Shown piece by piece: positions 45,715-47,764 of a DNA stretch of 64,000 bases. The position numbers and the translations under genes are program-made. Where the stretch lies: the IMG/VR virus record IMGVR_UViG_3300025161_000004, positions 182,769 to 246,768 of that record, one strand, 5' to 3'. Each line of letters begins with the position of its first letter. Within the stretch, counting starts at the first letter, position 1. The notes beneath the pieces were generated by a model. The model was not told the DNA's origin. It searched no databases and was given only the letters and a program-made list of their open reading frames with translations.

Positions 45715-45980
45715 GCAAATTTACTTTATTAAAAAGAACATACCCAACATCTAAAGTCGATAGAGAATGTGATGGTTATAAATATATTATGGAGTCATTT
45801 ACTAAAGAACAAAGAGATGCTGCAGGTATTGACGAAAGTAAATTAAAAAAGATAATATATTCTGGTGAGACATATATGTATCAAGTAGGAAAAGAAGATG
45901 GCGAATTTAAAACGAAATATATCTCATTAGAAAACTTTGAAATTATAAGAATGAAATTTTTTGGTAACCAAGATGATTAA
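45711..45980 (+). CDS. Hypothetical protein
   Basis: ATG overlaps the upstream TGA; ends NQDD. Confidence 0.65.
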   Translation: MSKFTLLKRTYPTSKVDRECDGYKYIMESFTKEQRDAAGIDESKLKKIIYSGETYMYQVGKEDGEFKTKYISLENFEIIRMKFFGNQDD

Positions 45981-46036
45981 TTTTTCGTATTATCTACATA
46001 TACGATATATTAACATAGTGGTTAATACTGGACTCT
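45964..46036 (+). repeat. Diverged copy of 47691-47764, including the 5' half of the suppressor tRNA
   Basis: GTAACCAAGATGATTAA.TTTTCGTAT...CATAGTGGTTAAT...GGACTCT occurs at both places. Confidence 0.85.
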
Positions 46037-46040
46037 ATAA

Positions 46041-46373
46041 TATGTCGCAAACTATTGTGACAGAAACGGAATTGAAGCAGCAACCGAAGAAGAAGCAAAA
46101 AGGAGATGTCCGTTTCTTCTAAATATATTTGAAGCATTAGGCATTATAAAACAGGAAACAAGTTCAATTGAGGTATTACAATTTGTTCTGTCAAAACAGA
46201 CCATACAATTGAAATCCAAAGAATCAGACAAAGAAATATTTGAGCGAATTGCTAAGATTCAGAAAAATCCAAAATCACTTTCAGATGAGGATGTTTCGCT
46301 GTTGAAAGAAGCGTTCGGCAAAGATTTTCTTACTGACAAATATTTTATTAAAACCTTTAAAACCGTAAATTAA
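46041..46373 (+). pseudogene. 5'-truncated gene fragment
   Basis: 110-codon open frame with no start (YVANYCDRNG...KTVN), ending 1 nt before the methylase ATG. Confidence 0.7.
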
Positions 46374-46374
46374 A

Positions 46375-47328
46375 ATGGGAAATAAATCACATTACAATTC
46401 AGGGCATATAGCAATGAACAAGCTCAAAAAAAATGGGGTTGCTCATAGTAGTTTCATTAAAACTCAATTACCTCAAAAAACTTATCACGGTTTATTTGTT
46501 GAGGACGCAGTTAAGTTTCTAAAAAAGCTACCTGATAATTCTGTGCAATTAATTTTAATTGACCCACCTTATAATCTCGATTTGGCAACATGGGACACAT
46601 TCAGCAATTATTTAGAATGGGCAAGGCAATGGTTGGACGAAATTTACAGGGTGCTTTCAGAAACGGGTAATTGCGTAATCTTTGGCGGATTCCAATATCA
46701 AGACCTTAAAAAAGGAGACTTGTTGGAGATTATGCACTATACAAGACATAATACTGACTTGCGTTTCATCAATCTTGTAATTTGGTATTACAAAAACGGA
46801 ATGAGTGCTCATCGCTTTTTTGCCAACAGACACGAAGAAGCTATTTGGCTTTCAAAAACAAATAAATATTTCTTTGACTTAGATTCTGTTCGTATTCCGT
46901 TTGATGAAGAAACCAAAAAATTGTATAAGCGAGACAAGCGACTAAATCCTGAAAGCGTCGAGAAAGGCAAAAACCCGACTAATGTTTGGGAAATTAGCAG
47001 ATTAAATGGTAATTCAGTTGAACGTGTGGGACACCCAACACAAAAACCTCTTGAACTGATTAGAAGGTTTGTAAAAAGTCTTTCTTACCCTGGTTCTTTA
47101 GTTCTTGATTTTTTTGCAGGTTCAGGAACTACGGGACGGATTTGCATTGAAGAAAGCAGAAATTCAATTCTTGTGGACAGCGACCCAAAAATGTTGGAAT
47201 ATTTTGACTTACATCTAAAAAATATGAACGGCAGCTTGTTTTCTGCACAGCATTGCATAAAAATCAATCCTGACTTGAACGAGTTTTTAGAATTGGTAAA
47301 AACTGAAAGTAAACTTAAAGCAGAATAA
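46375..47328 (+). CDS. Beta-class N6-adenine methyltransferase, M.RsrI-like
   Basis: DPPYN...GHPTQKP...LDFFAGSGT; closely resembles M.RsrI as I recall it ([31 protein letters not shown]). Confidence 0.88.
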
Positions 47329-47352
47329 TGCCACACCAAATTCCCAAATTAA

Positions 47353-47565
47353 ATGAGAAACAAAATTTTCATAAGCCATGCTGCACCTGATGACAACGAT
47401 TTTACTAAATGGTTGGCATTAAAGCTAATTGCCTTGGGTTATGAGGTATGGTGTGATGTTTTATTCTTAGATAGAGGAGTTCACAGTAAACTTATGTATG
47501 AGTTGACAGTAAATTTCTGTAAAATAGCCAATAGCGGCAACATTCCAAATGTTATTATGTTTTAA
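47353..47565 (+). pseudogene. 3'-truncated TIR-domain gene
   Basis: KIFISHAAPDDNDFTKWLALKLIALGYEVWCD, then diverges and stops at 70 aa. Confidence 0.75.
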
Positions 47566-47690
47566 GACATCGTCTTATAACAAGACAGTTTGTAAGTTTT
47601 GATGTTAAACCACCATTAATGGACTTCAAAATATTAAATTTAGCTATATGAAATTATCTTGGGACAAACTTGATGTGTTAGCAAAAAAGT

Positions 47691-47764
47691 GTAACCAAGA
47701 TGATTAAATTTTCGTATAATACAACAAATACGATCCATTAGCATAGTGGTTAATGTAGGACTCT
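47691..47764 (+). repeat. Second copy of the direct repeat (intact tRNA 5' half)
   Basis: See 45964-46036. Confidence 0.85.

Follow-up and report, generated by a model that had tools for sequence, protein, structure and literature searches.

How a complete bacterial-type DNA methylase gene, flanked by fragments of two other bacterial genes, came to lie inside a tRNA gene of a giant phage is the question raised by a locus near the end of the IMG/VR virus record IMGVR_UViG_3300025161_000004. The record is 246,768 bp long, is estimated to be ~79% complete and has a guanine-plus-cytosine (GC) content of 28.6%; relatives of the phage are themselves phage contigs of 320-360 kb. The analysis concerned the final 64 kb of the record (64,000 nucleotides, termed the window, from whose first letter positions are counted unless a contig is named), which contain 35 tRNA genes called by ARAGORN, a ribonucleotide reductase and a nicotinamide adenine dinucleotide (NAD+) salvage cluster. 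Here 1650 bp (46041-47690) are inserted within a former phage tRNA(CUA) gene, and 1437 bp of them are colinear with a bacterial defence island. A first-pass annotation had proposed that the phage lifted a piece of such an island from its host, keeping a protective methylase and losing the probable nuclease and a TIR effector. We hold with high confidence that host DNA was captured by illegitimate joining; the explanation as a whole, in which the captured DNA was also retained for protective methylation, is considered probable.

The bacterial origin of the segment 46043-47479 (+ strand) is indicated by its gapless alignment to metagenome contigs, by its composition and by its absence from related phages. 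It shares 96.3% DNA identity with one group of donor contigs (L162-L168) and 94.6-94.8% with a second (L182-L188), and its endpoints, 46043 and 47479, are the same in every donor contig aligned. Its GC content of 34.9%, compared with ~28.5-28.6% for the genome (standard deviation 2.6%), is reached by 0.9% of equal-sized genome windows; the GC profile therefore bears out the earlier impression, gained by eye, of a segment richer in GC than its surroundings. All readings were made with translation table 11, as the genome gives no sign of general TAG recoding: the long open frames gain only ~3% when TAG is treated as a sense codon.

From the bacterial genes the phage kept the last 110 of the 916 codons of a restriction gene, a whole methylase gene with its native spacing, and 42 of the 450 codons of a TIR-APAZ gene. 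The first remnant is the headless frame already seen in the first pass (46041-46373, +), which starts right after a stop codon and has no start codon of its own. In tblastn searches it matches the C-terminal end of 905-916-residue genes that lie directly upstream of the methylase in bacteria, and it corresponds to the 3'-terminal 110 codons of a ResIII/SF2-helicase restriction gene that is 916 codons long. The second remnant is a 70-codon frame (47353-47565, +) that matches positions 1-36 of the 122 in the TIR_2 model. It consists of the first 42 codons of the TIR-APAZ gene of a SPARTA system followed by 28 unrelated codons, donor likeness stopping at 47479, in good agreement with the cut after about 40 codons that had been described. 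An exact look-up of the 70-residue protein returned the phage only, with no bacterial source carrying an equal truncation. Both stubs are most simply taken as functionless debris, given that the restriction frame lacks a start and that 42 residues are too few for a TIR domain; a role of the restriction-protein tail or the TIR stub as a decoy against host systems is improbable.

Between the stubs lies an intact M.RsrI-like gene (46375-47328, +), as had been reported, encoding a complete 317-residue beta-class N6-adenine DNA methylase. Its product matches PF01555 over model positions 1-218 of 221 (E 7.6e-55; 186.7 bits against a cut-off of 26.7) and M.RsrI itself (PDB 1EG2; E 1.5e-109), residues 1-282 aligning to 1-285 at ~59% identity by hand count. 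The motif order is the same as in M.RsrI and is that of the beta class, with LIDPPYN (containing DPPY) in the first quarter of the translation and a ten-residue stretch (containing FAGSGTT) in the last quarter; conservation between the two proteins is highest in the stretch that separates the catalytic from the cofactor motif. The phage methylase is 97% identical in amino acids to the donor protein P0002, and the donor copy is recognised by the PADLOC MTase_II model PDLC03327 (E 1.1e-112). Relatives of the methylase number in the thousands, the nearest (94-97% amino-acid identity) lying on short metagenome contigs. The best matches in named genomes (85-88%) are from Bacteroidota (Parasediminibacterium, Saprospiraceae, Flavisolibacter and Flavobacteriaceae).

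In the donor contigs the genes truncated in the phage are full length. The cassette there comprises, in order, a 107-residue helix-turn-helix controller, the 916-residue restriction protein, the methylase, a 450-residue TIR protein and a 507-residue protein; the methylase gene begins one base after the 916-residue gene, and the TIR gene follows 25 nt further on. The restriction protein, which is the probable nuclease of the earlier proposal, has ResIII, SWI2/SNF2 and Helicase_C domains and a weak N-terminal match to the nuclease-like MTES_1575. Its C-terminal 110 residues recur together with the methylase in genomes of many phyla, so that a gene of the 916-residue type and the methylase form a conserved restriction-modification (R-M) pair. 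The lost TIR effector is a SPARTA TIR-APAZ protein (PADLOC Aga_TIR-PNTD1-PNTD2, E 7e-141), and the 507-residue protein is a short prokaryotic Argonaute (pAgo; E 4.8e-196). Both are nearest to BabSPARTA (PDB 8QLO/8QLP; E 5.6e-283 for TIR-APAZ and E 0 for pAgo), with TIR-APAZ ~93% identical as estimated from the alignment. The phage has neither APAZ nor the Argonaute, and most of the TIR domain is missing from its stub; as only 42 TIR-APAZ codons are present and there is no pAgo, a SPARTA system within the phage was rejected as a candidate. In the donors, the R-M system is fixed next to a SPARTA system akin to the structurally solved BabSPARTA, which works best at 50-55 C (PMC10899771).

The five-gene cassette occurs as one unit in varying surroundings (L162 and L182-L188), its flanks consisting of a tyrosine integrase and a reverse transcriptase (in L162), GmrSD, or a radical S-adenosylmethionine (SAM) gene, as expected of a defence island. 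In contig L182 the flanking radical-SAM gene encodes a product 100% identical to a protein from a metagenome-assembled genome labelled 'Bacteroidales bacterium', whose named relatives all belong to Bacteroidota, and this match places the contig in that phylum. The nearest homologues of the phage segment are thus contigs with full-length flanking genes, one of them linked to Bacteroidota, rather than phages, and the proposal that a piece of a host defence island was lifted is well sustained by the gapless match at 94.6-96.3% to contigs with complete R-M and SPARTA genes.

The state of the site before the insertion can be read from related phages. The insert is bracketed by a direct repeat (45964-46040 and 47691-47768; 84.6% identity over 78 columns), the sole such repeat in the 247-kb genome, whose unit of ~77 bp is made up of the final 16 nt and stop codon of ORF96, a 23-nt spacer and the 5' half of the tRNA gene. 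ORF96 (45690-45980, +) is a phage core gene, encoding 89-96 residues and matching no Pfam or PHROG family, whose homologues immediately precede tRNA(CUA) in 5 closer and 21 distant relatives. The left repeat copy (45964-46042, +) keeps the ancestral position after ORF96 and holds a decayed tRNA(CUA) 5' half, which neither ARAGORN nor Rfam calls as a tRNA, even at E<=1. Its tRNA likeness stops at 46040-46042, equivalent to tRNA positions 37-39. The right copy (47691-47768, +) is a duplicate of the ORF96 tail and spacer that runs into a working tRNA, and remains ancestral at 12 of the 14 sites that distinguish the copies. This intact tRNA (47732-47804, +; anticodon CTA, reading UAG) is called by ARAGORN and by Rfam (RF00005, 63.7 bits, E 5.8e-13) and has orthologues in the relatives. 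Two diverged copies including the tRNA 5' half had been described in the first pass, and here two details change: the unit measures ~77 rather than ~73 bp, and the left copy, which is indeed broken at the anticodon loop, is broken just 3' of the anticodon, which it retains in the mutated form ATA in place of CTA.

The empty site sought since the locus was first described is found in four phage contigs (L269-L272) that share the gene order of the window at ~82% DNA identity. In these ORF96 is followed, after 24 nt, by an unbroken tRNA(CUA); this single ORF96-tRNA stretch is where the two repeat copies of the window both align, and nothing in the contigs matches the 1650 bases of 46041-47690, so that the relatives do not share the arrangement with full-length flanking genes. 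In the 21 more distant relatives ORF96 likewise adjoins tRNA(CUA), with no half-tRNA duplicate and no methylase, restriction or TIR pieces. The closer relatives (ORF96 homologues at 81-84% amino-acid identity) were recovered by a word search with ORF96. A scan of Joint Genome Institute (JGI) metagenomes with an upstream 376-residue protein returned only relatives at ~65% identity, a blastn search of 44500-49500 against the INPHARED phage database gave no match, and an exact-pattern search of IMG/VR for the tRNA 5' half found none.

As 1.4 kb are shared by phage and donor DNA in the same samples, an assembler could in principle have been misled into joining the two. However, several JGI and Logan data sets yielded assemblies with the identical insert-bearing sequence, and contigs from runs of four other studies (three of hot springs and one of soil) lie on the insert. 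The left junction is spanned by run X6 record 23 and by X4 record 9, a 19.5-kb phage contig with a flank 3.3% diverged, and the right junction by X4 record 13. The same junctions in separate assemblies and runs show that the insert is not an assembly error. Moreover, run X4 also contains the bacterial allele (record 12), which differs from the phage allele at 74 sites and whose loose ends run into full restriction and TIR genes; since both alleles occur in this one independent hot-spring run, phage and donor share one spring. Transfer in the opposite direction, with bacteria acquiring the genes from the phage, is contradicted by the truncation of genes that are complete in bacteria of many phyla, by the empty site in the relatives and by the donor-like GC content. 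The direction is clearly from bacterium to phage, and a chimeric assembly or a reverse transfer is scarcely credible.

The junctions themselves bear on the mechanism. Both are blunt, with at most about one shared base; no integrase or transposase frame lies in 46041-47690 and no terminal inverted repeats lie at its ends, and the duplicated unit includes 43 nt of phage-specific DNA upstream of the tRNA. Blunt junctions, the lack of these enzymes and inverted repeats, and a duplicated upstream flank together fit illegitimate end joining or template switching in replication. During infection of a Bacteroidota host carrying the island, phage DNA that was broken, or was being copied, within the anticodon-loop region of the tRNA gene would have had its end joined to host DNA with no more than about one base of homology. 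The other end of the host piece would then have been joined back to phage DNA at a point 77 bp upstream of the break, perhaps in a sister copy of the genome. Such a rejoining would duplicate the tail of ORF96 together with the spacer and the 5' half of the tRNA, and one complete tRNA(CUA) would be left on the downstream side of the insert.

Anticodon loops are known integrase targets, and the position of the insert could suggest that a mobile element of the host island integrated there through an integrase and was later whittled down; the tyrosine integrase and reverse transcriptase beside the island in L162 would suit such an origin. Indeed, the locus resembles integrative elements of tRNA genes in its anticodon-loop insertion, in the partial tRNA repeated on both sides and in the preservation of a working tRNA. 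It differs in that the duplication comprises the 5' half and the 43 nt of upstream phage flank instead of a short core or a 3' portion of the tRNA, in that no integrase is present in the 1650 bp, in its blunt junctions inside genes and in the limited likeness (85%) of the copies. In addition, the left end of the insert falls within the restriction gene, and the other donor contigs have other island flanks. Site-specific integration is largely refuted and very improbable. Other candidates considered for the structure were a transposon or insertion sequence, rejected as there is neither an inverted repeat at the insert ends nor a transposase frame, and a tRNA intron, rejected as the right copy is a complete tRNA alone and no intron family is found at E<=1 in Rfam.

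Illegitimate joining accounts for the arrival of the segment, and its retention is a separate matter. According to the explanation favoured here, the insert would have been retained because the methylase, transcribed by read-through from phage genes that precede it on the same strand, would mark phage DNA with the methylation of the host system, and progeny would then be shielded from the 916-residue restriction protein in later hosts. Phage orphan methylases usually act in this way. All genes surrounding the insert are on the + strand, and no terminator-like site was found between the upstream phage genes and the methylase; scans for promoters and terminators yielded sites no more often than in shuffled sequence. 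The phage methylase has no working cognate nuclease, only the last 110 of 916 restriction codons being left, without a start codon. Phages with orphan methylases that shield them against R-M systems are known (PMC10286901). The methylase is reasonably likely to be active and protective.

Alternatively, the insert may be a neutral passenger, that is, recent debris of illegitimate recombination awaiting loss, with a methylase that is silent or useless. Such a reading is consistent with the short phage branch of the insert (30 of 1437 sites), which is no longer than the donor branches, with the lack of a promoter of its own, the controller gene being absent and the restriction gene having lost its 5' part, and with the identity of all assemblies of the phage, which suggests that the insert may be young. 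By our estimate, however, only about one in 10,000 pieces of 1.4 kb drawn at random from a genome of several Mb would contain a whole R-M methylase, and these low odds indicate that retention of the insert points to selection. Furthermore, the insert is present in phage populations of several studies, including the strain whose left flank is 3.3% diverged, and, as a weaker point, no insert-free form was seen among the contigs of the phage, even though the 77-bp repeats permit easy loss. A mere passenger is for these reasons regarded as unlikely.

The target of the methylase bears on what it could protect against. M.RsrI of Rhodobacter sphaeroides methylates the inner adenine of GAATTC (PMC7544214), and from the ~59% identity between the two proteins the phage enzyme has about an even chance of sharing this target. 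The phage genome has 70 GAATTC sites where 112 are expected (0.63), only a mild depletion, so that there are sites to protect if GAATTC is the target. Two other sites are far scarcer in the genome, GGTACC being absent (31 expected) and AAGCTT occurring twice (24.6 expected), and this scarcity suggests that host restriction systems recognising these two sites have long exerted pressure on the phage.

The age of the insert was considered from its private changes. Compared with three donor alleles, whose own private changes number 13, 27 and 31, the phage copy has 30 in 1437 bp, 19 of them from G/C to A/T. Even the two dead stubs have 8 of their 12 private changes at third codon positions, which indicates that much of the divergence arose while the genes were still functional in bacteria. 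The true donor would then be an unsampled allele, and the capture appears young on this scale.

Several observations weigh against a single recent capture that was retained for its methylation. First, the inserted DNA includes an orphan stretch of 211 bp between the bacterial DNA and the right repeat copy (47480-47690, +), which the first pass had not distinguished. Neither the donors and the phage relatives nor the rest of the phage genome, IMG/VR and the phage database gave a match to it: blastn against 275 loci and the phage genome returned nothing, and an exact 25-mer was not found in IMG/VR. Secondly, the left repeat copy has decayed too far. When the empty-site relatives serve as outgroup, the left copy holds the derived state at 12 of the 14 sites where the two repeats disagree, among them every differing site of the tRNA part, and most of these changes are from G/C to A/T; the private change of at most 2.6% in the dead stubs predicts ~2 changes in 77 nt (P ~1.5e-6), and this excess does not fit a single recent event with clock-like decay. 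Thirdly, the phage branch of the methylase has 16 substitutions, 10 of them at third positions, in which changes from before and after the capture are inseparable. Finally, the partner nuclease in the donor is a 916-residue ResIII/helicase protein accompanied by a controller gene, not a small endonuclease of the R.RsrI type, and the recognition site may therefore differ from GAATTC.

The orphan stretch opens with two imperfect 22-nt tandem copies (47477-47521), 86% alike, which begin three bases before the bacterial DNA ends; the motif is found nowhere else in the phage genome.

The excess decay and the orphan stretch can be read as marks of two steps at a fragile site, in which an older insertion broke and duplicated the tRNA, leaving the 211 bp as possible remains, and host DNA later replaced part of it. 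Under this alternative the anticodon-loop position would be a recurrent break site, much as the first pass had it when it called the locus an insertion hotspot. A left tRNA half ~6 times more decayed than the neighbouring captured stubs would be accounted for, as would the different origin of the 211 bp, and the region downstream of ORF96 is a mosaic among the relatives, with gaps of 0-795 nt; in one closer relative (L268) the tRNA(CUA) that follows ORF96 is altered, and another lies 1 kb further along. On the other hand, host DNA starts exactly where tRNA likeness ends, so the same point would have to be used twice, no relative has a half-tRNA duplicate, and no nuclease gene able to cut there was identified. 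The decay is also otherwise explicable. Either the tRNA was broken earlier, or the junction was copied with errors by error-prone repair synthesis, or decay of the repeat and stub was favoured by selection, or the insert was refreshed by recombination with host islands. A two-step origin, together with recurrent breakage, is judged improbable. Insertion inside the tRNA gene is shown, but the hotspot is not established, with one event only and 21 distant relatives lacking a half-tRNA duplicate.

A mosaic test of the insert against the three donor alleles found informative sites intermixed, with no clear blocks. There is a slim chance that the tRNA site is a recurrently broken site of cargo exchange, or that the segment is kept 'young' by repeated recombination with host islands. 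If the segment were refreshed by hosts, R-M alleles of those hosts would be continually exchanged with the phage and shuttled by it.

The locus has clear parallels and is a well-documented instance of a known process, a giant phage taking a host R-M modification gene. In the classic case, associated with Hill et al. in 1991, the lactococcal phage phi50 reportedly acquired a methylase domain that belonged to the LlaI system of plasmid pTR2030. Phage orphan DNA methyltransferases that originate from bacteria are attributed to Murphy et al. 2013 where PMC10286901 cites that work. The present phage resembles these in being of a virulent type with a host R-M methylase and no nuclease, with self-methylation and escape from restriction as the expected outcome. 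Unlike in the known orphan methylases, the raw capture is still visible here, with both stubs, a 96% donor allele in the same habitat, the empty site and a 77-bp duplication that saved the tRNA. A counter-defence gene has in effect been caught at acquisition, with donor, debris, empty site and junctions on record, which provides a worked example of illegitimate capture and leads to the prediction that the methylase should protect DNA from the 916-residue helicase-type restriction protein. The fragment is also a sequence-level link to a host for an uncultivated, tRNA-rich lineage of giant phages, for which such links are otherwise hard to get; the host would be a hot-spring Bacteroidota bacterium with an island of R-M and BabSPARTA-like genes.

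The SPARTA half of this island may also be met by the phage. The NAD+ salvage cluster of the window (23534-26921, +) encodes a 310-residue protein with a C-terminal NUDIX domain, a nicotinamide phosphoribosyltransferase (phrog_448, E 9e-166) and a phosphoribosyl pyrophosphate (PRPP) synthetase, and is similar to the NARP2 route of phages, in which NAD+ is rebuilt from nicotinamide (10.1101/2024.02.11.579819; PMC13464706). As the donor island carries SPARTA, which destroys NAD+, the cluster may be a counter to it, and the phage may hold counters to both halves, R-M and SPARTA, of one island.

Apart from the insert, a second methylase-like gene (44584-45714, +; 376 residues, with weak matches to PF01555 and Eco57I) lies two genes upstream of the captured methylase. 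It is native to the phage and is kept at ~65% identity across the giant-phage family, its position relative to ORF96 differing in distant members. ARAGORN also calls a tRNA-like gene with an irregular two-base 'anticodon' (cg) at 43040-43110 of the window and at 2990-3061 of L269. As it occupies the equivalent position of the tRNA cluster in the phage and in this ~80% identical relative, it is conserved and not noise.

The tRNA(CUA) genes of the relatives are themselves varied. In L268 the altered gene directly after ORF96 (6254-6404), which is not called by ARAGORN, resembles tRNA(CUA) but has a long extra arm past the anticodon stem, made up of 27 additional bases, and the second, different tRNA(CUA) lies 1 kb downstream at 7266-7339; L191 and L201 each have two unlike tRNA(CUA) genes. 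In L179 the ORF96 homologue of a distant relative (6996-7289) has an in-frame TAG where five other homologues have glutamine, which suggests that TAG may be read as glutamine in that phage.

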